Assembly (NCBI GenBank): GCA_964036045.1
Contig: OZ038378.1
Coordinates: 178,808,001 to 178,872,000 of the forward strand
Length of the DNA: 64,000 bases
Origin: Eutreptiella sp. 'Long Island Sound 2002'
Taxonomy: Eukaryota; Protista; Euglenida
Reading direction: 5' to 3'
The translations under genes and the position numbers were made by a program. Position 1 is the stretch's first letter. Each line of letters starts with the position of its first letter. Below the pieces are notes generated by a model, which did not search any database, had not been told where the DNA came from, and saw only the letters and a program-made list of their open reading frames with translations. Below, in pieces: positions 3,291 to 46,300 of this stretch.

Positions 3291-6200
3291 CTGTGGGAGA
3301 CAGGGCGTCTGCCAGGGAGGTATCAGAAGAGAGGAGGGGGGGAGGCTTGCCACCCACAAGTGTGTGTACCAAAAATGGCCCGACAAGATCCTCCTACTGG
3401 TACATTTTGTGTTTTCGCAATATGGTCACTTTGGTCTGGGGGCGGGTCCAGGGGGGGGGGGGGGGACCCCATCCTCCTACGGTGTACGGCCATTCTAATA
3501 CGTCCCTGGCGTCTGCCTAACGTTGTGCTGTGCCACATGCACAGGTCACCACCCATGACAATGCCCATGCCCAAGCCCGTACCAACGCTCATGCCCATGG
3601 GCACGCCAATGCCCACGCAGATGCCTATGCACATCCCCACATTCACGCGCATGCCAGGCCCACGAAATACCTACGTTTGCGCATGCATGGCCACATCCTG
3701 TCCAGGTGAAGCCCAGAGCACCAATCCCCCCCCAAACATTTTAGCCCCCTGAAGTTGGGGGGTGGGGGTGGGGGTAGGGGACGCCAGGCTGGGGTCCTGG
3801 GTGCCCCAATATACATACCTCAAAATGATCCCCTCGTTGCACTGACCATTTAGAACACATTTATGTGGGGTTTTTGAAAAGAAAAACATTTTTTAACCCC
3901 TAGGGGTCCGGTCCCCCAAACCTGGCGGGGGAGGTCAGGGGTCCGAAAAAATTTTCCTGTTTTGCATACATATTTCGATTCCCCATGAATGCTGAGCATT
4001 TTGAGTATAGACACCTGGAGTAAAAACGAAATTGTATCCCCCACCATATGCTAAAAAAAAAACTCCTTCGGCGCCAAATTGAGACCAGACCTTCTCAACA
4101 TTTTGGCCTTTTTCAGGGGGGTGGGGGTGGGTGGGGGTGGGGGTGTCAAGGCCTGCAGTTGGGCAGCCCCCATGACCCACTGTCACAGATTCTTGCAGAA
4201 TATTCAATTCAAAACAACCCTGATATCAATCCGAATCCCATGTAAATCAGACACGACAACTAAAAACCAAGCAAGTAGGAGGTGGAAGCAAAAAGAGCCC
4301 CCCCCCCCCCCGTCCCGAGCACCCAAGTCGTTGCAGGTCCCCGTAGCAACGGGGTCCTTTGTAGCCCCTGAATCCCTTAAAGCACCACAATGCCACTGCA
4401 TACCACAACCCGCATTTTTGGGTCAGGTTGCGCCGGATCTCGTGCGCAAGACAAGTGCCTGTGAGCGATCAGCACCGGGGGGTCGGGGGGCGGGGGGCAA
4501 ACGGGGGCACAACCCCGTTGCCGATTTGGCCACAGCGCACGAAGCGTGCCAGTCAGCGTATCTACCTGCCGCCCGTACCCAGCGCCCTCTATCCCCCCTT
4601 ACCCCAACACACACCACTGGCAATCGGGAGCCATGACCGCCGACCAATGATGTGCTAGAGGGGGGGAAGGGAGGGAGGGGGGTCGGGGGGAGGTGGGAGA
4701 GGGGCCTGATGGGAGCAGGCCTCCTTCTTCCAATTTTTCAAGCACAAGATTGCCGCTGACCCACAACGCATTCGGAGGGAGACATAGGCGGACGGCGCGA
4801 GTCAGCAACGAACCTGGCCGTCGGTCACATGCCCCGGTGGCAGAGGCAAATACTGAGGGTCAACGGTGTCGGCGCCCGTCTCCAAATAAAGATTGCAGTC
4901 ACAAAGATCATGGCGCACTTTCTGAGGGCACAAAAGCCGAAGGACGTAGACTGCATTGCCTGGTGGCCTCTTGCGGGGCCTTGGCCCTGGGTCCCCGATG
5001 GCGATGGCCCATCCACGCCCCACCAAACAGGCACACCCCTCCTCCCTTCCAAATGGACCAAAAAAGTCCCGAACGAGCAACACCATGGACAACAAGCAGC
5101 ATCTCAGAGAGTCTTCATGAGCAACAAAGGAGGAGGTCAACGGCAGGGCGAGTGGCATGCTCCTGCAGTGTTCTCCAACGCTCCTTAAAGGGCAGCCCTG
5201 CCCCATGGGGGTCTTGGCGAGGAATGTTTGGGACCCGGGCACGCTTTGGGAAAGGGGGTGAGGGGAGTGTTGTCTTTGCTGATGTGCAGCCCTTCACCAC
5301 GGGGGTCGGTGGCAGCCAAATGTTGATTTGATTTGATTTGAGGGCCGATCTTGAGGCTCACAGGCCGTCTGGGGGGCGCACGAGGGCTTCCCGGCGACTC
5401 TGCATATTGGCCGGCCATGCGTATGATGCACGCCCCGTCCGCCCACGCGGGCCTTGGGAGGGCAGGCCACACCGCCATGCCCTGGGCAGGGGGGGGGAGG
5501 ACTCCTTGCGGCTTCCCACCGGGGGGCGTCATGCATGTCAGCAGAGGGTGGAGTCCTCCAGCTCGCCCGAGTGTGTTCGGCAGGTGTGAGCTTCTTCAGA
5601 CCTGCAGACACCATTGATGTAATGTGATATCTCTTCACAACCCTCTGGTGCGTGTGTTCCATTTTCCGTGGGATTACCATTTCAATTCATCTTTTGCTAT
5701 GTTGCTGCATCCTCAGCCTACCCAGGGACACTGAGCAGTCGCGTGGGCACCAGGAGGCTCGGAACCACCGACAGGTGGTGACAATCTCCGCAGTGTGGTT
5801 GGGACGCCATTGCGCATAGTGGGGTGCAATTTAAGGGGGGGGTGTTAAGGGGTCTGCTTGTAATGTACGTCGGCGTTTTCATTAAGCATATGATTGTGAT
5901 TGTAACCATGAACTATTAACAACTTCCCCTTTTTACGGACTCCCTGCTTTTCGTGTTTGTGGGATTTCCTTTTAACGACTTCAGAAAGGTAATGCTCTTC
6001 TTGATGTTGCTTCTTGGGCGTGGCAGCGTCTACTGCAATCTGCTGCAATTTTCGTTTACTAAGTAAATTACTTAGTAGAAAAAAAAAGTAAAATACTTGA
6101 TAGAAAATATTTTTTCATTACTAAGTTTCATTTCTGACTGCTGACACTTCTGATTCTGCCCCCCGCTTTGAAGCGGTGGGGACCCCCCCCGGCGGCAGGG

Positions 6201-9200
6201 GTTATGTAGCCACCTTGCCCACTTGTGGGCCACTTTTGATTCTGCCCCCCGCTCTGAAGCGGTGGGAACCCCCCAGGCGGCACGGGTTATGTAGCCACCT
6301 TGCCCACTTGTGGGTATGGCCACCACCCTTGTGCATTCAGCATAGGGCGGAGGGACCGTTCTCCACCCATGTGCATGCCAGCATAAGGTGGAAGGATTGG
6401 GTCTCCACCCCTGTGCATGTCAATACAGGTACGGTACAGGTACGGGTACGCTGGGTTTTGTGCCACTGCAGCCAACTTGCGCCACGTTACCATTCGAGGG
6501 GTTATGGGGGTGCTGCAATAGTTGCATCCGGGCTGCAGCGCACGTACTGCAGCTGTTGTAGCCTGTGTCTTGCTGCCACGGTGGCATTGCAGCCCTACTT
6601 CAGCCCACCACCATCCCGTTACCATTGAGGGGCTATGGGGGTGCTGCAACAACCGCACTCAAGCTGCAGCGGACGCACGGCAGCAGCTAGCAGCTGCAAC
6701 CCATGTCTTGCAGCAGTTCTGGCACAGCATCTGCACTGCAGCCAAGCACGCCCCTTTACCAATCGAGTGGCCACGGGAGTGCTGCAATAGCCGCACTCTG
6801 GCAGCAGCTCCCGTACTGCAGCTGCCGCAGCCGGTGTCTTGCCGCACTGTTGGTACTACAGCTGCACCGCAACCCACCCCCACCCTGTTACCAACCGAGG
6901 GGCTGAGGGGTAGGGAGGGGCGGAGCGGGGGGGGGGGGGGGGGGCGGAGCGGGGTTAGGGGGGGAGTCACTTCAGCGCATGGCGGAGGGTATTGTTCTCC
7001 ACCCCTGAGCTTGCCAGCACAGGGTGGAGGGTACGGCTCTCCGACCCTGCGCACTACAGCACAGCACAGGGTGGAGGGAGTGGTTCGCAACCTCTGTGCA
7101 CATCAGCACAAGGCGGTGGGTGTGCACTCCACTCCTATGCACATTAGCACAGGGGGACAGATCTCTCCCCTTGTGCTCGTTAGCACAGGTTGCGAGGTAG
7201 AGGTCCCTTCCCTTGTGCACATCAGCGCCGTGCGGAGGGAAAAGCAGCCAATGTGTGACCCCGAGGGGTGTGCAACCGTTTTGGGGGTTATACCTCCCCC
7301 CTTCGTTGACCCAAACCTAGGGGGTCGGCAGGTCGGGCAGTCTGCCCGACCCGCCGGGCTCCCCTGGGGGGGGGGGGGGGGGGTACCCCAACATACATAC
7401 CTCAAAATAATCCCCATGACACGCTGATCATTTTAAATATACACAAGTGGGGTAAAAATTTTCTTCAGAAAAAAATTTCCCCATCAACTCGGGCTCCCAT
7501 CAGCCAAATCTGACCCGGAGGTCAGTTCGGGGTCAAAGTCCTTTTATGTGTTTTTCATCCATGTTTGAATTTTCCACAAAATTCTGAGTATTTTGAGTAC
7601 AGACACATAGGGTCCAACAAAAAAATCCCCCCGTGCCATATGCCTAAAACAAAATCTCCGGCGCCTCTGGCACCCACAGGCCCCATTGTTCCGTGCAACC
7701 ATTCTGGGGTCCGTAGAGCCCCCCCCCCTCCCCCTTTGGGGTCGGGTCCTGACAAGGAGCAACCCCCGTGCCCTTCACAAAGCTTGGCAGACTTCACTCA
7801 GTCTTCTCTTGCTTTGCCTTCACTCCATCTTCCCACCAATCCAGACCTCAAGCGGCTGAGCCCCGCCTCCCTGAAGCCAGCGTTGCGGTCCCTGCGGAGT
7901 CTCCCTGAGCGTCCTCTCGGCCATTCAACCAATATCATGGTTTGAATTTGCCCCTCTTCAACAGAGCATCCCTCTTTCCCTGCAGATGTGCGCTCCTCCC
8001 CGGCATCCACCCCAGGCAATGGGTCTGTGGACTGCTAAGCATGTTGTTCCAACCTCCGTCAATTTCTGTCTAAGCTGTGGGGCTCGGAAAATGGAGGGGG
8101 GGGGATTACCACCTCTGCAATCTCTAGCCACATGTAGAACGGCTTTCCTCAGCCTCATGGCCCACCATGAAGGATATCGATCTGCTTTTGTACCACCCAC
8201 TGCTGCGTGTATTATTTAGTGACACTCCCACTGTCATTGCATTCGCACACGCCACAGAGCTCCGGCCATGTCACATGGTCGGTTTGCTGCAATGTGTCTC
8301 CCTGCAAGCAAAACTCCGGTGGGTATGCACCAAGGTGGGCAACACACAGCCATCAGGGTTTTGCACGTACTCACTGGGTACCATCCCCCCGCCATGCCAA
8401 TAGCCCAGGCCATGATCTTACTTCCAGGAGGGGGGTCCATTGACAACTGGGGCCATGTTTGTTCGATCTGTGTGGCGGTTCCGTTGACGTGCGCGTAAGG
8501 GGGACCAACGACTCGACACACGGTCAAATCTGTGCAGAATGTGCTCATCACTGTGCTCATCGCCAGCAGGTGTGTGCAACTGGGCATGTTTTGCAGCCCC
8601 TAGTGCTGCCTAGGACCAACCATGGCCATTCCAAGGACGCGAAATTACGTTTGCACTGCAAATGGCCTTTTTTTGCGAAGATCAGTGCCAAAAGTGTTAT
8701 TGGTGGCCTCAGTCACCTATTGGTACATTCCTAAAGGGTTTGCATTGGGGATGCCGTGACAGGGATGCAAAAAGACATGGCCACGTTTGTGCTATCTTGT
8801 CGTGACCCATTCTCTGCGAGGTGGACTTGCTGAAGGCACTTTTCCAGCGCCTTTGGACACCTCATGTGGGCTTTCTTGGTCGCTACGTGGCAACTAACTG
8901 TCAAAAAGGAGGGCTGAGGGGGTTGAGGGGTTGTGGGGGTGTTAGGGTCACGGACTGGGACACCCCTCAGCATCTGCGGCTGAGGATGGAGAGCAACTAA
9001 CAAACAATTGAATGCGTTGGACACATAGGGTGATGGGGTTGCTGGTTGAACAAGGCGGACTTTGATGTTAGTGTTGCTACTGTCACGGTCTCCACACAAC
9101 CAGTTTCCTCCCTTGTTCTGACCTGACCCGAAAGCAGGCAGTGCACACTTTGTAGACGAGGGAGTACATCTTCATGTTGGAGGACCGCCACTTGCGTCCC

Positions 9201-15200: not shown

Positions 15201-17214
15201 TGCAGGCTGCAGATTCCCACTCCCTGACACCCCATGCCTTGTGATGTTTTTAGCCTCACATGTTGCAAGTCATGGAGGATAGGCGCCCTTGTGCAATGCA
15301 ACGGCACAAAAGCTGGGCATTTGGTGAAACCTAGTATGCACGTGACAAAACCTAGTAAAATGTGGTGAAACCTAGTAAAAAAAATTTTTTAAAAAATTTT
15401 TTTGAAAAAGTTTTTTTTTTACTAGGTAAAAAAATTTTTGAAAAATTTTTTCCTTACTAGGTCAATTCCCGGCCGGGGACAAGATCAGAAGTGGCCAACA
15501 AGTGGCCCGAAAGTTCTACAGCCTGGTTCTTTTGTTTTTGGCGGTTTTGAAACCTAGTAAGAAAAAAAAGTTTTTTTTACTAGGTTCTGAAACCTAGTAA
15601 AAAAAAAATTTTTTTACTAGGTTCCCGATACCTAGTAAAAAACTAGTGAACCTAGTAAACTGTTACCTAGTAAAAAAAAAACTTATTTTAAAAAACTTTT
15701 TTTTACTAGGTTTAACTACAGACCCACAAAAGCTACAGCTGGTGGGGCAGTCCACTTGTGGCGACCCCTACGCACCGGGGGCTAAGGAGAGCAGGCAGGA
15801 GGAGCACGAGTCAGCCAACACCGAATCCCATGCCGTGCAGACCTACCACCACTTTGCAATTTCCTGCCCTTGGTATCCAACGACGAACAAACCTGCAAAC
15901 TGTAAAGCAAAAGAAAAGCGCTCAAGGCCCAAACGCTACTAGTGGCAACATTATCAGTACTGATGGTAGTTGCGCAAAGCCAAGGGCTGCTGTTGCGGTT
16001 ACCACGTCGTGTGGGACATGTGGAAATCTTTGCACCATGCCCTGCAGGGGGTTCCTTCAGGGAAAAGAAAATAAGAAACTGCCTGCGGTATCAGTGTGTC
16101 CGGACTGCCTACGGATCGACGTCGGTTGGCGGTTCAACAACGGGGGTTGGCAGTTAATGGACGGCGGGTGGTGGTTAACTGACGGCGGTTGGGGTCAACC
16201 GTCGGCGGTTGGCAGTTAAACGACGGTGGTTGGCGGATAACCGACGGCGATTGGTGGGTCACAACGGACAAGCGGGGATGGGGGGTCCTTAAGGGGGGGA
16301 AAGGACCTAAAGGACCCCCCCCCCATGCCCTGCTATGCCATCAGGGGAGGAAGCCTCAGGGTGGTGCCACTAGGTACCACGTGGAATATGAGCTCCCTTA
16401 GCAATATGCTTCGTGGAAAATGAGCTCCCTTTGCAATATGCTTGTCCCTTGGCTAAGTGGCAGCACGTGGGAAGGGGGAAGAACCCGCACTCACATGTGG
16501 ACTGGACATATGCGGCAGTCCAATCTCACTGGTGAAATGTGAATGCTGTTGTATGCCACCGTATGGCATTGCATGCTGCCACTCAAGGGGGGGGGGATTA
16601 CCGGCTACGTCATCGGTCAGATACTGTAGGAGGCGGGTCATACACCATGCAGAGGGACCGTTTCTTTATCAACGGTCCTGGCATAGCACATATTCCACAC
16701 CACAGCCATGATCCCTTGGCAAGACTCTAGGCCTTGCCCAGGAGGAGGAGGAGGAGATGCGGTCCCCGTAGGGTGCCCCTGCGCACCAGCCCCCACGGAC
16801 TTGGGACGCGGTCGTCGGTGGGGTGACCCTCTTGGGCCTGAACCGACTCAGCATCATGGCGGAGGCCCTCCTCTTTGTCTCTTCTGTAAGGGTACCCGAC
16901 CCATTGTCACCCTGGTTATCCATGTCGTGGGTTCCAGAAAGTATAGCCCAGAAAGTATAGGGAGCACGCATGTACACACGCCCGTAAAGCAGACAAACAG
17001 ACACACACACACACACACACACACTCTTGGTGAGGGAAACCGAGAACCAACCACCAAGAAACCCAGTGTGGACGATGAATGACACAGCAGGGCAATGTGG
17101 TCACAGGGCTCTGGTCTCCAAACACATCTTCAGGCCATGCAGAACAATGAAATTGTGATGAGGCTAGGCCCCTTTCGAAAAGAAAAAAAAGGACTTTGAG
17201 AGAGAGAGAGACAG

Positions 17215-37676: not shown

Positions 37677-38369
37677 CCTGAAAGATGGGACCGAACGGGC
37701 TACAAAGAAACTTTAGATGTGCTGAGGCAGGAGCAAATGTAGCCCCATCGACAACCTGCACCGTGTAACCCTCCTTCATCTCAGCAACGTTGGCCTCTTC
37801 GCTGGAGCCGCTGCCCCCTCCCTGGTGCCCCCACTTTCCTGTAGTGCAGAAATACCCCCATTCGAGACAAGAGCCCACACAGCAGCAACCGCCCAGGTCA
37901 AGCATACCAAATGGACTACGTGCCCTTTTGAGTCAAGTGATTGGGAACTCTCCTTCTTCAATCTCAGTGGGACGCAGTGACTCAAACCACGAGTGGTGTA
38001 CGATACTGTATGACCATTTTGCAGGTTGCTACAATAGCCTGCTGTATAGGAATGTGGCAAAGACAGGGCTGTCCTTAACGCAAAAAAAAAAAAAATCCCG
38101 TCCGGTACGGGGTAATTTCAAAAGAGCCCGCGGACAGTACATGTCTTCACCCCGGTGTTCCCAATTGTTCAACCATGAGTCCCTAGCCCCAAATTGGTCT
38201 CAGCACATAACCATATGATCCTTGCCCCACATGTGTTGCATGACCCTACCTCACACCCTGCACAATTCAACATGAAGAAGAGCAATACTTTTTTTGAATC
38301 AAATATAGTGATGCAGCGTTCGACCACCCGAATGTTCCATCGCCGGTGGCACAGCTGGAAACAAACTCC

Positions 38370-40517
38370 CTACTGCTGGTACAACCTGTGGAAGTGCACC
38401 CTGACACGCTCCATAAGCTCACCCTTCCCCCCTCTCACACTCAAACCATGCTTCCTACAAATGGCCTGAAACTCAACCTTAGTCCACTCATGCAACCTCC
38501 CCCTCTCCATTGCACTCAACACCGCCTCATCCACATCATACCGAAACACCAACTGCGTGCCAGGGTTAGAAGAGGTGGAGGGGACAGCTGAGGGGTTAGG
38601 AAGGTCAGAAGAGGAGCTACTGGCAACTGCATCTGCCTGCTCCATATCCTCGTCCTCACTGTCTTCGTCCTCACCCTCCAACTCAACCCCATACACATCG
38701 CCAATGTCGGCGTCACGTGTCGCCCTCTTGGGGACAACCCACAAATCTCGAATGTCCAACGGAACCTCCGCCTCAACATCCTCTTCCAAAGAAACTGCCA
38801 AATCCTTGAAAGCCGCAAACCCAAGCAAACCACCATCTTCCACCTCAACCGCATGCCCTTGCTTCCGTTTGCGCGGGCGGAAAGGGGCCTTCCGAAGGTC
38901 CTCAAAAACCTCAAAGGGCCCCCAATCCTCTGGTGCCTCCCCATTGCACCTTACCCACAGCGTCTCACACATGCGCTCCGTGGTTTGGCCAAAGTCCGTA
39001 GCCGTCACGTAGCTAAAAACTCTCTCACACGAACACGAGCTTGCCTCAACCCAATCCTCCAGGTTAGCACTGCCATCCCACTCAGCTCGCTTGAATCGTG
39101 CTTGTACGTCCTCAATCAAACTACGAAGAAACTTCATCCGGCTACCCTTGATGACGCTACTCCCTACGTCAACACCCAACGATTCCTCCCACCCCCCTGG
39201 AATGACATGACGCATGGTGTGCAACAGCTGTGTGCACATCACGTTCATCAAACCCTGGACGGCGGCGACCCGTGCCCCCCTGGTCACTTGAACTTTCTTG
39301 CTTGTGGCACAAACCACAGCAAAAACATCGCAAAAAAAGGCTGCCGTCAACTTGAAGAGGGGGTGTGAAAGTGCATCGAACAAGCCCTGGGCCTTCTCCC
39401 TCCGCCCCAGGTCAGCCTCATGACTAATGTACTCGGGCAAGTGTTCCACAACAGCAGGCAAATTCTCTAGCACAATATCAAGCTCGTGGAACATTGCTTC
39501 CACCCAACGCACACCAGTGCGGCGGGAGAAACAAAACTTCCCCCCCTTGCGCCACAACCCCCGCATGCGCTTCGAGCTGGTCCTGTAGAAGCAGGCCAGG
39601 AAGGACACCAGATCATCCAGTGCATCGTACCACAGCTTGACCTTTCCCTTTGCAGTGCTGATCGCTCGCATCAGGCTATGTGCCGCATCCTTCACCCAAG
39701 CAATGAGTTCCCTCCCCCCTTTCTCCCTTACATTGTTCAGCAGACCCACATAGGCACCCATAGTGCCGGCACCATCCGAGACCACTGCGATGATGCGCTC
39801 CTCAATCACCTTCCACTCAATGCCCAGCTGGTCAAACACCTTCCGGACGGTGTCATCATACAGCTGAGCATTTGCCGCATCAGGGTCACCATCGGCCGTT
39901 TCACTCCCTTCCCCCCCCTCCCTCCCCTGGGCTCGCACCATGTAAGCAAGGCCGACAAAAATTTCCTCTTCTGGAGTGCGCACAAAAACTGCAAGTGGCT
40001 CACTCTTGGCCCCCCTTCGAGCGCCAGCATCCAGCACAATTGCAACCTTCCGTGCTCTCAACACACGGTTCCTTGTTCGCCGGCGACCTTGTCCGACGAT
40101 CAAGGCACGTAGTCGTTGGTAGGCCGACCCGCTGCTGTAGTTGCGCTGGCCATCTTTGGCCTTGATGCCATCTAGGTGGCACAACCGGCTGTAAAAGGCT
40201 CGGCCTTTGCCTGCGTGCAACGTCGCATAGCAGTTCACCGTGGCCCTTTGCACGGGCGCTGGGATGCAACGTGGGGGGTCTTGGGCAGGGGAATTGTCTG
40301 CGCGTGCAACAGGGTCAGCGGGGGGCAACCAGCGCTGATGCGTGGCACTTGCCGCGTGGGCGGCAATGACATGCCGCTCTTTTGGGGCGGAGCCTGCGCA
40401 CCAGGGACGACCCCATTCTAAGGGGGGTGCCAATTGGCGGCGCATATTGCACACTTGGACCCGGAAATGGTGGTCCGGTGCCATGGGTGGATAGCAGCTA
40501 TGGGAAGTAGATGGCAA
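38370..40517 (-). CDS. hAT transposase (ZNF862/DUF4371-like) with C-terminal SAP-like domain; N-terminal zinc finger frameshifted
   Basis: 715-codon ORF. Catalytic-like AIVLDAG, AVVSDGAGTM, KDAAHSL (CxxH position), FSRRTGVRW and SSCSCERVFS. Acidic tract, then LHEWTKVEFQAICRKHGLSVRGGKGELMERV. The true start is uncertain. Confidence 0.85.
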   Translation of the reverse strand: MPSTSHSCYPPMAPDHHFRVQVCNMRRQLAPPLEWGRPWCAGSAPKERHVIAAHAASATHQRWLPPADPVARADNSPAQDPPRCIPAPVQRATVNCYATLHAGKGRAFYSRLCHLDGIKAKDGQRNYSSGSAYQRLRALIVGQGRRRTRNRVLRARKVAIVLDAGARRGAKSEPLAVFVRTPEEEIFVGLAYMVRAQGREGGEGSETADGDPDAANAQLYDDTVRKVFDQLGIEWKVIEERIIAVVSDGAGTMGAYVGLLNNVREKGGRELIAWVKDAAHSLMRAISTAKGKVKLWYDALDDLVSFLACFYRTSSKRMRGLWRKGGKFCFSRRTGVRWVEAMFHELDIVLENLPAVVEHLPEYISHEADLGRREKAQGLFDALSHPLFKLTAAFFCDVFAVVCATSKKVQVTRGARVAAVQGLMNVMCTQLLHTMRHVIPGGWEESLGVDVGSSVIKGSRMKFLRSLIEDVQARFKRAEWDGSANLEDWVEASSCSCERVFSYVTATDFGQTTERMCETLWVRCNGEAPEDWGPFEVFEDLRKAPFRPRKRKQGHAVEVEDGGLLGFAAFKDLAVSLEEDVEAEVPLDIRDLWVVPKRATRDADIGDVYGVELEGEDEDSEDEDMEQADAVASSSSSDLPNPSAVPSTSSNPGTQLVFRYDVDEAVLSAMERGRLHEWTKVEFQAICRKHGLSVRGGKGELMERVRVHFHRLYQQ

Positions 40518-43303
40518 TTGGCTACCTCACCCCTGCCGTATCGGGGAGCCCCACCGCCTCAGAGCGGGGGCAAACAGAAGTGGCCCACAAGTGGGCAAAT
40601 TCGGCTACCTCACCCCTGCCGTATCGGGGAGCCCCACCGCCTCAGAGCGGGGGGCAAAATCAGAAGTGGCCCACAAGTGGGCAAATTGGCTACCTCACCC
40701 CTGCCGTATCGGGGAGCCCACCGCCTCAGAGCGGGGGGCAAAATCAGAAGTGGCCCACAAGTGGGCAAATTGGCTACCTCACCCCTGCCGTATCGGGGAG
40801 CCCCCACCGCTTCAGAGCGGGGGCAAAATCAGAAGTGGCCCACAAGTGGGCAAATTTTCTACCTCACCCCTGCCGTATCGGGGAGCCCCACCGCTTCAGA
40901 GCGGGGGGCAAAATCAGAAGTGGCCCACAAGTGGGCAAATTGGCTACCTCACCCCTGCCGTATCGGGGAGCCCCACCGCTTCAGAGCGGGGGGCAAAATC
41001 AGAAGTGGCCCACAAGTGGGCAAATTGGCTACCTCACCCCTGCCGTATCGGGGAGCCCCACCGCCTCAGAGCGGGGGGCAAAATCAGAAGTGGCCCACAA
41101 GTGGGCAAATTGGCTACCTCACCCCTGCCGTATCGGGGAGCCCCACCGCCTCAGAGCGGGGGGCAAAATCAGAAGTGGCCCACAAGTGGGCAAATTGGCT
41201 ACCTCACCCCTGCCGTATCGGGGAGCCCCACCGCTCAGAGCGGGGGGCAAAATCAGAAGTGGCCCACAAGTGGGCAAATTTCTACCTCACCCCTGCCGTA
41301 TCGGGGAGCCCCCCACCGCCTCAGAGCGGGGGGCAAAATCAGAAGTGGCCCACAAGTGGGCAAATTGGCTACCTCACCCCTGCCGTATCGGGGAGCCCCA
41401 CCGCCTCAGAGCGGGGGGCAAAATCAGAAGTGGCCCACAAGTGGGCAAATTGGCTACCTCACCCCTGCCGTATCGGGGAGCCCCACCGCCTCAGAGCGGG
41501 GGGCAAAATCAGAAGTGGCCCACAAGTGGGCAAATTGGCTACCTCACCCCTGCCGTATCGGGGAGCCCCACCGCCTCAGAGCGGGGGGCAAAATCAGAAG
41601 TGGCCCACAAGTGGGCAAATTGGCTACCTCACCCCTGCCGTATCGGGGAGCCCCACCGCCTCAGAGCGGGGGGCAAAATCAGAAGTGGCCCACAAGTGGG
41701 CAAATTGGCTACCTCACCCCTGCCGTATCGGGGAGCCCCACCGCCTCAGAGCGGGGGGCAAAATCAGAAGTGGCCCACAAGTGGGCAAATTGGCTACCTC
41801 ACCCCTGCCGTATCGGGGAGCCCACCGCCTCAGAGCGGGGGGCAAAATCAGAAGTGGCCCACAAGTGGGCAAATTGGCTACCTCACCCCTGCCGTATCGG
41901 GGAGCCCCACCGCTTCAGAGCGGGGGGCAAAATCAGAAGTGGCCCACAAGTGGGCAAATTGGCTACCTCACCCCTGCCGTATCGGGGAGCCCCACCGCCT
42001 CAGAGCGGGGGGCAAAAATCAGAAGTGGCCCACAAGTGGGCAAATTGGCTACCTCACCCCTGCCGTATCGGGGAGCCCCACCGCTTCAGAGCGGGGGGCA
42101 AAATCAGAAGTGGCCCACAAGTGGGCAAATTGGCTACCTCACCCCTGCCGTATCGGGGAGCCCCACCGCCTCAGAGCGGGGGGCAAAATCAGAAGTGGCC
42201 CACAAGTGGGCAAATTGGCTACCTCACCCCTGCCGTATCGGGGAGCCCCACCGCCTCAGAGCGGGGGGCAAAATCAGAAGTGGCCCACAAGTGGGCAAAT
42301 TGGCTACCTCACCCCTGCCGTATCGGGGAGCCCCACCGCCTCAGAGCGGGGGGCAAAATCAGAAGTGGCCCACAAGTGGGCAAATTGGCTACCTCACCCC
42401 TGCCGTATCGGGGAGCCCCACCGCCTCAGAGCGGGGGGCAAAATCAGAAGTGGCCCACAAGTGGGCAAATTGGCTACCTCACCCCTGCCGTATCGGGGAG
42501 CCCCACCGCCTCAGAGCGGGGGGCAAAATCAGAAGTGGCCCACAAGTGGGCAAATTGGCTACCTCACCCCTGCCGTATCGGGGAGCCCCACCGCCTCAGA
42601 GCGGGGGGCAAAATCAGAAGTGGCCCACAAGTGGGCAAATTGGCTACCTCACCCCTGCCGTATCGGGGAGCCCCACCGCCTCAGAGCGGGGGGCAAAATC
42701 AGAAGTGGCCCACAAGTGGGCAAATTGGCTACCTCACCCGTGCCGTATCGGGGAGCCCCACCGCTTCAGAGCGGGGGGCAAAATCAGAAGTGGCCCACAA
42801 GTGGGCAAATTGGCTACCTCACCCCTGCCGTATCGGGGAGCCCCACCGCTTCAGAGCGGGGGGCAAAATCAGAAGTGGCCCACAAGTGGGCAAATTGGCT
42901 ACCTCACCCCTGCCGTATCGGGGAGCCCCACCGCCTCAGAGCGGGGGGCAAAATCAGAAGTGGCCCACAAGTGGGCAAATTGGCTACCTCACCCCTGCCG
43001 TATCGGGGAGCCCCACCGCCTCAGAGCGGGGGGCAAAATCAGAAGTGGCCCACAAGTGGGCAAATTGGCTACCTCACCCCTGCCGTATCGGGGAGCCCCA
43101 CCGCTTCAGAGCGGGGGGCAAAATCAGAAGTGGCCCACAAGTGGGCAAATTGGCTACCTCACCCCTGCCGTATCGGGGAGCCCCACCGCTTCAGAGCGGG
43201 GGGCAAAATCAGAAGTGGCCCACAAGTGGGCAAATTGGCTACCTCACCCCTGCCGTATCGGGGAGCCCCACCGCCTCAGAGCGGGGGGCAAAATCAGAAG
43301 TGG
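40513..43303. repeat. 85-bp tandem array, about 33 near-identical copies, inside the hAT element
   Basis: Unit CGGGGAGCCCCACCGCYTCAGAGCGGGGGGCAAAATCAGAAGTGGCCCACAAGTGGGCAAATTGGCTACCTCACCCCTGCCGTAT. Period checked (41041 vs 41126). Variants are mostly one C/T site and 1-bp indels. Confidence 0.98.
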
Positions 43304-46300
43304 TGCCCAAAAGAGGGCGGCGGGGGGGGTAGACATGGCCCACGTTTGGCCGGGGGAAAAAGGCCTCTAGGGGCTGTCCTTAAGGGCTGTCCTTAACAAA
43401 AAACAAAAAAAATCTCGTCCCTTAAGGACAGCCCTGGGCAAAGACACTTAAGAACAACCCAATGCTGGGTGGCGACGAGAATAACTGACGAAGCCAACCA
43501 ACAGCTCTTTCCCAAAAGCCCAGTAGCTATGACATTCCATTCCATGTGATGCAGAGCACATGACCATGGCTGCCCACATCCCTAGACATGTCGGGCGATT
43601 TCTGCCACCTTCCTGCTTGATATGGGGTGGCAGGGCAAAGGCAACAGAAATGCACGTTTTTCAAGGTGACTGGGCCAGACTTTGGAACGGGGAGTGAGAG
43701 ACAATGGCAGAATGCTCAGCAACAATGGGCCATTTCACATGCAGTGCACTATCTGTCAGGTGCTGAACTGGGAGATTGTGGCACTTGTGTTTCTGTCAGA
43801 AGCTCACCCCAGAGTTAGTGAGGCCAGCATAGTCCACATTGAAGGCAGCAACGTCATTCATGCACACAAAGTCAAGAGTGGGGGCTGTCATCAAGCCCTG
43901 CATGGATACAGGGCAGATCCTCTGTGTTAGCAGTACACTGAGGTAAATATCTAGTGTAGTCTCCAAAGAATGCGAGACAGTCTGGAAGGATCATTCCAAT
44001 ACATCCACTGCGCTCTTTTGGGACAATGCAGTTGCACTGCGTGGGCACCACATAGGCACCGCATGCGCAAAGAAAGCCGCATAACGGGCACCGCTTGCAT
44101 ATTTGGCAATATCCACCAAGTTGGAAACCCTCTAAAACCGCCCACCATCTGTGTACTGTGTACTTCAAATGTGCAACAAGGTTATCCACCCTTGCATGAT
44201 CCCTTGATATCTGGATGTACATCCTTATAGCGGACATCCATGCCTGCCGAAGGACCAATGTTCAAATGAGAGTTGTTGGCGTTCACCAACTGCCTTAGGC
44301 ATGAACACTGCGCATGAGCAAACCACAGAGGGTACGTTTGCCCGGCGCGCCCAGCATCCAAATGAATGTTCCGGCCATCTGCTTTACCCCCCAAACATCA
44401 CCCCCTCCTCAAGCCGAGGAACCCAAAGCACAAGCACATTGTATGACTGTTGGCAATCAAATAACTTCCCAGTTTTTCGCCCAACAAATGGGACGATCAC
44501 ATGCACCCTACCCTTGTAGGCCCCATCATGGCCACCCACCTCAAAATCAAAGAATCCCCCTCTTGTGCATGACGGACCACTCAAGTGGCCACACCGAAGA
44601 GTGGGAGTCCTGAACCCCAATTCGAGGGGCCACACCAAAGCGTGGGAAAACTTTGCCCGGCGCGCCCGGCGCGCTAACGTACATCCACAGACCGCAGGCC
44701 TGGGGTAGCAAATACTTTCTTGATATTTGCAAAGATTAGAGTTCACTTGTTGATAACGTCAACCATTGTCACACAAAGGGCAGACAGTCCTAAATTACAC
44801 ATTCCCAGCCCATGGAAAAGTTTAACGAAAAATTTCCTACCCTCTGGGCACCAAAGGCTCGTTGTTGTCTCATGAGTGGCGCTTTAACCCCAAGCAGTCC
44901 CATTGCAAGGCCATTTCACTTTTCTCCAAGATGGCAGGGGTTATGCAGCAATTTCACTGTTTCTCTGAGATGGCAATGTTTATGTCGCCATATCACTTTT
45001 CCTCGAGAGGGCAAGGGTTTTGTGACACACTACACTCATAGCATGCCCATATGCTCAGTGGGGTCTTTGTCTGAGTACTGTGCAATCCCAAGCACACAGG
45101 CCGTGTTTATAAAATGACCATTGCTTTGGACAACCTTGGGAATATAATACAGATTCATGACCTCATGCCGGGAACTTCGGCAGATGTTGTGATTTGAGAT
45201 CAATGTGGTCCTTTGGAAAGCACGGGCAATTCCTTGATTATTTGATCCTTTATTATGAAGCGGGTGCTCATGATGGTGTATACAAGGGTTGTGCCTACCC
45301 AATGGTGCCTTGACTTGGGCATGAGACTTTGATGGAAACCCAACAGGCCTATAATGATGTGCATGGCTTGTATCGTGCAAGGCTGGAGCACCTTTTTGCC
45401 TGCTGTAGCAATGGAGGAGGAATGGAGCATCAGCCCTTCAATGTTCTCATTTATGCAAGTGAGGGATAACAATGGTCAACGGGGATCCCATGCTTGGATA
45501 AGGCTGTGCTTTTGTGCCACTACTAGGTATTCTGCCAAACAATACAAGCAAGCCGCACCGCCACTATAACTGCCATTGTCACTGCCACTGTCATTGTCAC
45601 TGCCACGCTCCGTATCCACATGCCTTTTGTGCATCCATTGTCTCCATTGCTTTACAATTGCGCCTACTCATGCACGTTACCCTGGACCAAGAGAATCAAC
45701 AAAAACCATGACAGCATATGAGAAAAAGGAAGGGGTTGGTCAGGGAAGGGATTGGGCCACAATATATATTACCTGATGGGTACAGGATACTGTGACTATC
45801 CACTGCCAGAGAAGAAGAGAACGGCCCACATGGTTCCAAACCAGTGATGGAGTACCTTGCGCTCTTGGACAGAGCGCCCATTGCTCTTTTCACTTAAATG
45901 TGCTCAAGCTCCACCAGAATGTGGCATCGGAAACCTCTCTCCCCAGCCACCACGAGAACGTGGTTACTTCAGAATGGCATAGCTTCAGGCAACACATGTG
46001 CCTTTTGGAGCCCTGTGGTAAGGGCCAGGAGACGGAAGCTATGGTTGAAAGGGTTAGCATATGGTCACTGCAGAGGCGCTGACAAGACTGATGCAGACAC
46101 CCCGCTGCAAGGCACTGCGACTGTGCAAGGTGGCAGGGCTCTCTGGTGTGCTGATCATAGGGCCCTAAACCGACACACGTTGTAAGTGCACCCACCCCAA
46201 GCCGTTGCAGGGCAAAGCGCAGCAAAGAAAGGGGGGGGGGACCCCTCATTCCATCCCGACCACAGGTGTCCACTTCAGGGGTTCAAGGGTGCCCGAGGGG

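Follow-up and report, generated by a model that had tools for sequence, protein, structure and literature searches.

A window of 64,000 nucleotides from the genome of Eutreptiella sp. 'Long Island Sound 2002' (C1:178808001-178872000 of the 2.28-Gb assembly) contains a 5,373-bp transposable element at positions 38064-43436, which is most likely a recently inserted, internally deleted copy of a high-copy and very divergent transposon of the hAT superfamily. Here and below, C numbers designate contigs and L numbers (L001-L043) the loci fetched from the assembly, and positions without a contig number are those of the window. The full family order is a 15-bp terminal inverted repeat (TIR), about 300 bp of left subterminal DNA, a transposase gene in antisense orientation, about 0.96 kb of upstream DNA, a tandem array of 85-bp units and a right end. 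The latter consists of an invariant junction followed by about 130 bp of subterminal DNA with two TIR-like 13-mers and by the right TIR. The full transposase, of about 890 amino acids (aa), is made up of an N-terminal helix, two CxxC...H...H motifs, a predicted RNase-H-like DDE core with an equally predicted helical insertion domain, an acidic linker and a SAP domain. Comparison of the copies shows that the element inherits the array as one of its parts, carries it along at each transposition and has it in lengths that differ from copy to copy. It also shows that the copy in the window is one deletion derivative, broken at the inner edge of the array.

The exact 15-mer of the TIR occurs 1,691 times in the genome (880 + 811) versus none for the reversed control, and this pattern is therefore not due to chance. 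Other copies align with the window exactly from the first base of the TIR to about the last one and no further. A first look at the genome gave 928 candidates for the left 345 bp and 1,581 for the right 149 bp, and the 40 copies scored for each end are 94-100% identical. Conservation reaches 98-100% in the left subterminal region across the 40 best-scoring copies. A 30-mer taken from its invariant 41-bp block has 458 matches in the genome and a 31-mer of the right subterminal region 369, both with at most one mismatch. On C1-C5, pairing of exact ends delimits 43 elements, ranging from 640 bp to 39.6 kb with a median of 2.3 kb. The upstream region adjoining the array was found in 776 first-look candidates. 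The 5' part of the gene is held by only about 70, and most copies are therefore deletion derivatives.

Twenty TIR sites on C1, fetched in positional order (L001-L020), illustrate this diversity. Four of them are family loci (L013, L014, L015, and L020), two carry diverged arrays beside the same TIR (L018 and L019), and the remaining 14 have only the TIR or short end sequences in common with the family. Nine distinct pairs of 8-bp target-site duplications (TSDs) were read, that of the window and eight perfect or near-perfect ones in L001-L020, and five further copies have distinct flanks.

The 85-bp array is a constant feature of the family. All 13 further family loci covering this region (L013-15, L020, L022, and L025-32) have it in an identical orientation, located between the upstream region and the right end. 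Its outer border, the 17-mer GGTGCCCAAAAGAGGGC, occurs 634 times in the genome, against one match for the control. Measured arrays contain about 6, 6.5, 7.4, 7.5, 10, 18, 27, 33, and 33 units, and the L023 element, judged from coordinates only, also has about 33. Unit identity between arrays is 92-98.7%. The array is enclosed by both ends and by differing pairs of 8-bp TSDs in the window, in L013, in L014/15 and in L020, and it is followed by the right end and a distinct right flank in L025, L030, and L031. L014 and L015 have a common TSD, GCACTAGT, and flanks that are 99.5% identical over 5.3 kb. These two segmental duplicates have 32.9 and 26.9 units, respectively, and array length therefore changes in place. 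Beside the same TIR, L018 carries at least 80.7 units (at least 6.9 kb) with about 85% identity to those of the window, and L019 carries decayed 85/86-bp arrays with about 68% identity. The array must thus be older than the split between these elements. Unit-like fragments already precede the array in L020 and L023, which hints that the 85-bp unit may have arisen from the element's own DNA.

An initial annotation, made from the window alone, had described the array as the cargo of the transposon. The loci above show instead a fixed structural part of the family with an invariant outer junction. The same annotation raised the questions of whether the array recurs in other TIR-bounded copies with different TSDs and whether its length varies between copies. 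Both are answered in the affirmative, with 6 to 33 units measured. That the array is foreign DNA picked up by a single copy, or that its adjacency to the transposase gene is an assembly error, could be argued from the 24-mer across the junction at 40513, which is unique in the assembly, and from the runs of identical units, a type of sequence that assemblers handle badly. We consider this scarcely credible given the array at the same place in each sequenced family member that covers the region, its recurrent outer junction and the diverged versions in two other elements with the same TIR. Furthermore, other copies have array-to-gene deletion junctions of their own within 40-940 bp of that of the window.

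Two other places in the window show related repeats. A diverged variant of the 85-bp unit, with 84-86% identity to the array, is present in two copies at 6145-6314, in the opposite orientation and beside A/T-rich repeats of the ACTAAGTA type, with no family junction and no good TIR nearby. At 15322-16267, A/T-rich repeats of 20-40 bp occur with a 21-bp repeat of the CGACGGCGGTTGGCGGTT type and include partial matches to the unit (15472-15519). They resemble the L018 DNA that separates the TIR from the array.

The element in the window had been taken for a complete one. This does not hold, as eight other copies match it up to element position 2452 (window 40515) and then run into sequence that the window lacks. 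The fullest copy, L023, extends 1,465 bp beyond this breakpoint, and L020 shows the array starting directly where this stretch ends. The window copy therefore lacks about 1,465 bp, corresponding to the first 186 or so codons of the gene and about 0.96 kb of upstream DNA. The frames of L023 and L024 begin with MGR(T/N)K, about 186 codons upstream of the break. In seven copies (L022-L025, L028, L031, and L032) the region of the second CxxC...H...H motif is read in the ancestral frame, and in five of these so is the first motif.

The remaining coding sequence of the window copy is also frameshifted. In a tblastn search with the L024 protein, residues 187-217 align with 40513-40421 and residues 216-806 with 40427-38628, in different frames. 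A DNA alignment with four copies reveals two differences: a run of C is one base shorter in the window, and two extra bases follow a few positions on. Because of this frameshift, the ATG at 40484 is an internal, out-of-frame ATG, and the first 21 residues of the product are out of the ancestral frame. Other copies have junctions of their own, which retain approximately 41, 200, 230, 290, 455, 650, or 940 bp of the stretch missing here. With so many distinct junctions, the inner edge of the array is a recurrent deletion breakpoint. The lost N-terminus, with its zinc-finger-like CxxC...H...H motifs, is a probable DNA-binding region. The window copy is probably non-autonomous and should be labeled defective instead of active in annotations. 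One result weighs against this account of the family: no copy combining an intact gene with both ends was found among the fetched loci.

Could the window nevertheless hold a complete and autonomous hAT transposon, with the 715-aa frame as a working transposase? Such an element would fit the stop-free frame, the presence of all catalytic motifs, the 98% identity of the protein to that of other copies, and the perfect TIRs and TSD. It is made highly improbable by the ancestral upstream codons with CxxC...H...H motifs, kept in seven other copies and lost here, by the absence of the 0.96 kb of upstream DNA and by the frameshift. We therefore retain the reading of a defective derivative.

A stop-free family transposase frame of 897 aa is found at C14:36650214-36653795 (L024 and L043). 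Upstream of its start codon, this copy runs into single-copy DNA with neither array nor right end. It could be an immobilized or domesticated copy.

The insertion in the window was proposed to be young, and several observations bear this out. Its copy is 98-100% identical to other copies, and its ends and TSD are perfect, as would fit a recent event. Moreover, both flanks match one other site of the genome, C10:11607481-11607739 (84% identity) and 11607761-11607914 (81%). In this paralogue about 21 bp lie between the aligned blocks and the 5.4-kb insert is absent, which fits an insertion that would postdate the duplication. No long reading frame spans the empty site of the window as rebuilt by joining its flanks with a script.

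We file the family as a divergent member of the hAT superfamily, on the basis of its TSD, its TIR, its catalytic motifs and its predicted Hermes-like fold. TIRs of hAT elements start with the consensus YARNG, and the CAGGG start of the window TIR fits it. The motif order D...D...DxxH...RW...SCERVFS is kept in the family and, except for the first D motif, is invariant across seven sequences down to 52% identity. In L024 numbering, the motifs are IVLDAG; S431 D432 G433; D453-A-A-H456; R513 W514; and S672-x-E674 R675-x-F677 S678. We take this order, by comparison of motifs and not from a statistic, to be that of hAT transposases, namely D, D, (C/D)xxH, RW and E in an S-x-E-R-x-F-S block. An AlphaFold model of the family transposase was built from 150 sequences and has a predicted local distance difference test score of 70-95 in the core and 56 on average. 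In a Foldseek search with this model, Hermes chains occupy the first 11 places (E 1e-4 to 2e-3, probability 0.94-1.0), and the next match is the P element transposase with a probability of 0.12. VIA-align gives Z scores of 7.2-8.5 with Hermes over 218-235 residues (306-665 of the model against 136-451 of Hermes), and Hermes is its only target spanning both the RNase-H core and the insertion domain. In the ESM Atlas, the nearest Pfam-bearing clusters carry hAT-type families with scores of 0.83-0.87, which we consider a lead only. The hAT-type cut-and-paste mobility proposed for the element is thus supported by at least 10 independent insertions with 8-bp TSDs, by the CAGGG TIR and by the Hermes-like predicted fold.

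Several results weigh against this placement. The global fit of the model to Hermes is poor (TM score 0.13-0.22, root-mean-square deviation about 21 Å). A Pfam scan of the protein finds only the SAP domain, PF05699, the hAT dimerization domain, having no match even at E 10, and hidden Markov model (HMM) searches of PDB sequences yielded nothing relevant. When its profile was compared with canonical hAT transposases encoded in this genome, no significant match resulted. In phmmer and hhalign alignments, ASSCSCERVFS is placed opposite ATSAGVERLFS at the expected location, again without significance. A word search for related proteins returned only nine unnamed ENA proteins, and a large profile search gave 255 matches, of which each of the 150 listed is a short piece of this very family.

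These results could indicate another superfamily with 8-bp TSDs, such as P, Mutator-like, Merlin or an undescribed one. Such an assignment would account for the absence of a hAT Pfam domain or significant profile match in a genome that has at least 1,760 PF05699 candidates elsewhere. It would also agree with the nine TSDs, which lack the nTnnnnAn target preference (T at position 2 in three of nine, A at position 7 in one of nine). This preference is typical of the Ac group and is not defining for hAT. We nonetheless judge a non-hAT origin improbable, in view of the lead of the 11 Hermes chains over the P element in Foldseek, the VIA-align match covering both core and insertion domain, the invariant motif order and, as a lead, the hAT-type families of the ESM Atlas clusters. 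The placement among hAT elements is therefore the one used below. The C-terminal SAP domain is unusual for a hAT-type transposase.

The initial annotation had further proposed that the element could be a vehicle seeding satellite arrays across the genome. A 20-mer from the core of the unit occurs 67,793 times in the genome, versus none for the control, and thus represents no less than 5.8 Mb (0.25% of the assembly). Among the best-scoring array loci where a neighboring end could show, six of seven have correctly oriented family ends. The array at C2:181.84 Mb belongs to an element of 2.9 kb, and the ends are 17.1 kb apart at C5:3.12 Mb and 39.6 kb apart at C1:168.1 Mb. At C5:8.02 and 54.29 Mb the left end is 10-12 kb away, the array at C20:0.53 Mb also has family ends in the correct orientation, and a further locus, C10:48.7 Mb, was matched via the end search. 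Ends 17 and 40 kb apart suggest far longer arrays than the measured ones. In addition, array matches on the same strand are densely packed in a C7 interval of about 103 kb (96.598-96.702 Mb).

Other observations weigh against a general role of the element in the spread of the satellite. Among the first 10 array loci of C1 (0-22 Mb), only two have the junction 17-mer beside them, and none has the exact TIR 15-mer within 10 kb. Only two of these ten positional arrays could be tied to family ends, and most of the 67,793 core copies therefore may or may not lie inside elements. The very long arrays, namely those of the 17- and 39.6-kb elements and the interval on C7, are deduced from coordinates only. 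Two further searches left the unlinked arrays unexplained: the L018-type end has 68 copies in the genome, none of them near the sampled C1 arrays, and an exact 30-mer of the upstream region has only 26 matches. Seeding of arrays by the element is supported for several hundred loci. The vehicle proposal stands as regards the TIR-bounded arrays at differing TSDs. Most of the satellite might also be due to the element, the family junction having been found at two of the ten positional arrays.

We propose the following scenario for the family. Array length would change through unequal exchange or replication slippage, and internal deletions might result from faulty gap repair, by analogy with Ac/Ds. 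Without its likely DNA-binding N-terminus, the copy in the window would be unable to mobilize itself and would need full-length copies acting in trans. Occasional runaway expansion could then give rise to satellite-scale blocks.

As to the function of the array, the best reading is that it is passively carried, with turnover by unequal exchange. It is also possible, though rather unlikely, that the array acts in cis as a module under selection in the element, such as a multimerized transposase-binding platform or a promoter or enhancer for the downstream gene. Such a role would explain why its position and its 85-86-bp period are kept despite divergence of the units to about 68% identity, and why it is retained in the sampled non-autonomous derivatives. 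The fixed position of the array just upstream of the leader of the gene leaves room for it. The unit and the left subterminal DNA have nine 7-mers in common versus 2.7 expected (P about 0.01) and none of at least 10 nucleotides (nt), which is weak evidence for transposase-binding motifs common to both. An RNA gene and a hairpin were considered and rejected: neither ARAGORN nor Rfam detected a tRNA or another known RNA in the array, and a pair of units, folded as single-stranded DNA, does not exceed shuffled sequences in stability (z = -1.16).

The family resembles the hAT elements (hobo, Ac, and Tam3; Hermes, PDB 2BW3 and 4D1Q) in its 8-bp TSD and short CAG-initial TIR and in a DDE transposase whose RNase-H-like core is predicted to be interrupted by a helical insertion domain. 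It also resembles them in its TIR-like subterminal motifs and its many internally deleted non-autonomous derivatives. It differs from them by a protein too divergent for detection by Pfam or HMM searches and ending in a SAP domain, by nine TSDs without the nTnnnnAn preference, and by an 85-bp array of 6 to at least 33 units near the right end.

Satellites spread by transposons are already well documented, and what is new here is the host and the lineage. Tetris, a foldback transposon of Drosophila virilis, has spread its own internal tandem repeats by transposition, and these have expanded into satellite arrays (PMC4079207). In Tetris the repeats belong to long TIRs, whereas the TIRs described here are 15 bp long and the array is internal and one-sided. 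Other transposon-borne satellites are those of the En/Spm-like Atenspm/ENSAT1, of the Xenopus tropicalis MITE miDNA4 (a miniature transposable element with inverted repeats) and of Helentron arrays (reviewed in PMC9659126). The Atenspm monomer originates in the 5' untranslated region of the autonomous element (PMC9659126). As in Atenspm and miDNA4, the monomer would arise inside a class II element, be amplified in tandem and be dispersed with the element. Unlike the present family, those elements belong to CACTA and Tc1/mariner, and none of their hosts is a euglenid.

Transposons carrying tandem repeats are a recognized source of satellites, to which this family adds a well-resolved euglenid example. 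Mobile elements of euglenids are barely described, and in the Euglena genome paper neither DNA transposons nor satellites are treated at the level of families (PMC11252322). Three stages are seen together: near-full-length copies have short arrays, deletion derivatives have tens of units, and there are probable blocks of many kilobases. A change of length between two segmental duplicates is also on view. The family moreover represents a hAT-like lineage with a SAP domain that standard domain models miss, and repeat annotation in Euglena probably files it as 'unclassified'.

The features of the window copy are collected in table 1. The initial description of its anatomy was accurate: the TIRs are complementary at 15 of 15 positions, the 8-bp TSD is perfect, the transposase frame is long (715 aa), and the array of 32.8 units makes up over half of the element (2,788 of 5,373 bp, 52%). 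Tandem Repeats Finder gives the array a period of 85, 98% matches and a score of 5384. Its units have a mean pairwise identity of 98.5%, with runs of five and seven identical units. The 704-aa frame retains the catalytic core and the C-terminal SAP domain and lacks the ancestral N-terminus. The SAP match passes the Pfam cut-off (E 6.9e-8, 32.4 bits vs. 26.3).

Table 1. Features of the transposon copy in the window (window positions)
Feature	Position	Strand	Evidence or remark
Left TSD, GGCAAAGA	38056-38063	none	Direct reading; same octamer as 43437-43444
Left TIR, CAGGGCTGTCCTTAA	38064-38078	+	15/15 complementary to right TIR
Left subterminal region, 3' of transposase stop codon	38079-38369		Contains invariant 41-bp block
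Minus-strand open frame, 715 aa	38370-40517	-	Open reading frame (ORF) list; stop-free
5'-truncated transposase frame, 704 aa from ATG at 40484	38370-40484	-	ORF list; tblastn
SAP domain codons	38391-38495	-	Pfam PF18953 SAP_new25, residues 676-709 of 715-aa frame
Frameshift relative to family	40421-40427	-	tblastn frame change; two indels in DNA alignment
Deletion junction, coding sequence fused straight to array	40513-40514		Homology break relative to fuller copies
85-bp tandem array, 32.8 units	40516-43303	+	Tandem Repeats Finder
Array-to-right-end junction 17-mer, GGTGCCCAAAAGAGGGC	43302-43318	+	Identical in 8/8 aligned copies
Right subterminal region	43304-43421		Two direct copies of TIR-like 13-mer at 43371-43396
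Right TIR, exact reverse complement of CAGGGCTGTCCTTAA	43422-43436	-	Inverted-repeat pair, 15/15
Right TSD, GGCAAAGA	43437-43444	none	Direct reading

The TIR is not confined to the family. Many unrelated short elements in L001-L012 (C1, 2.4-27.7 Mb) end in exactly this 15-bp TIR, and at eight of these loci paired ends delimit elements of 222-453 bp whose 8-bp TSDs are perfect or nearly so. Several MITE families may thus be mobilized by one transposase lineage. In L004, L006, L008, and L012, short elements with the TIR have other long tandem arrays less than 10 kb away (47 bp x 55, 96 bp x 24, 49 bp x 14.5, 199 bp x 5.8, and 420 bp x 5). L013:3539-4847, about 1.1 kb from the family copy, contains another hAT-like coding remnant, which is decayed and has 32-56% identity to the family transposase.

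Parts of the family are also found in regular series. Same-strand pieces recur every 16-33 kb on C7:73358802-73514721 (with one gap of 3.3 kb), every 150-180 kb on C13:15.54-16.19 Mb and every 3,891 bp on C19:40635111-40643342, which suggests tandem or segmental duplications including whole elements. The junction 17-mer also recurs, with spacings that are multiples of 103 bp on C1:55255053-55255998 and nine times within 9.4 kb on C2:24224848-24234204, and tandem arrays are therefore formed by further parts of the element as well. Finally, a 25-nt Euglena spliced-leader sequence has 5,161 dispersed matches in the genome when one mismatch is allowed, whereas the control has none.

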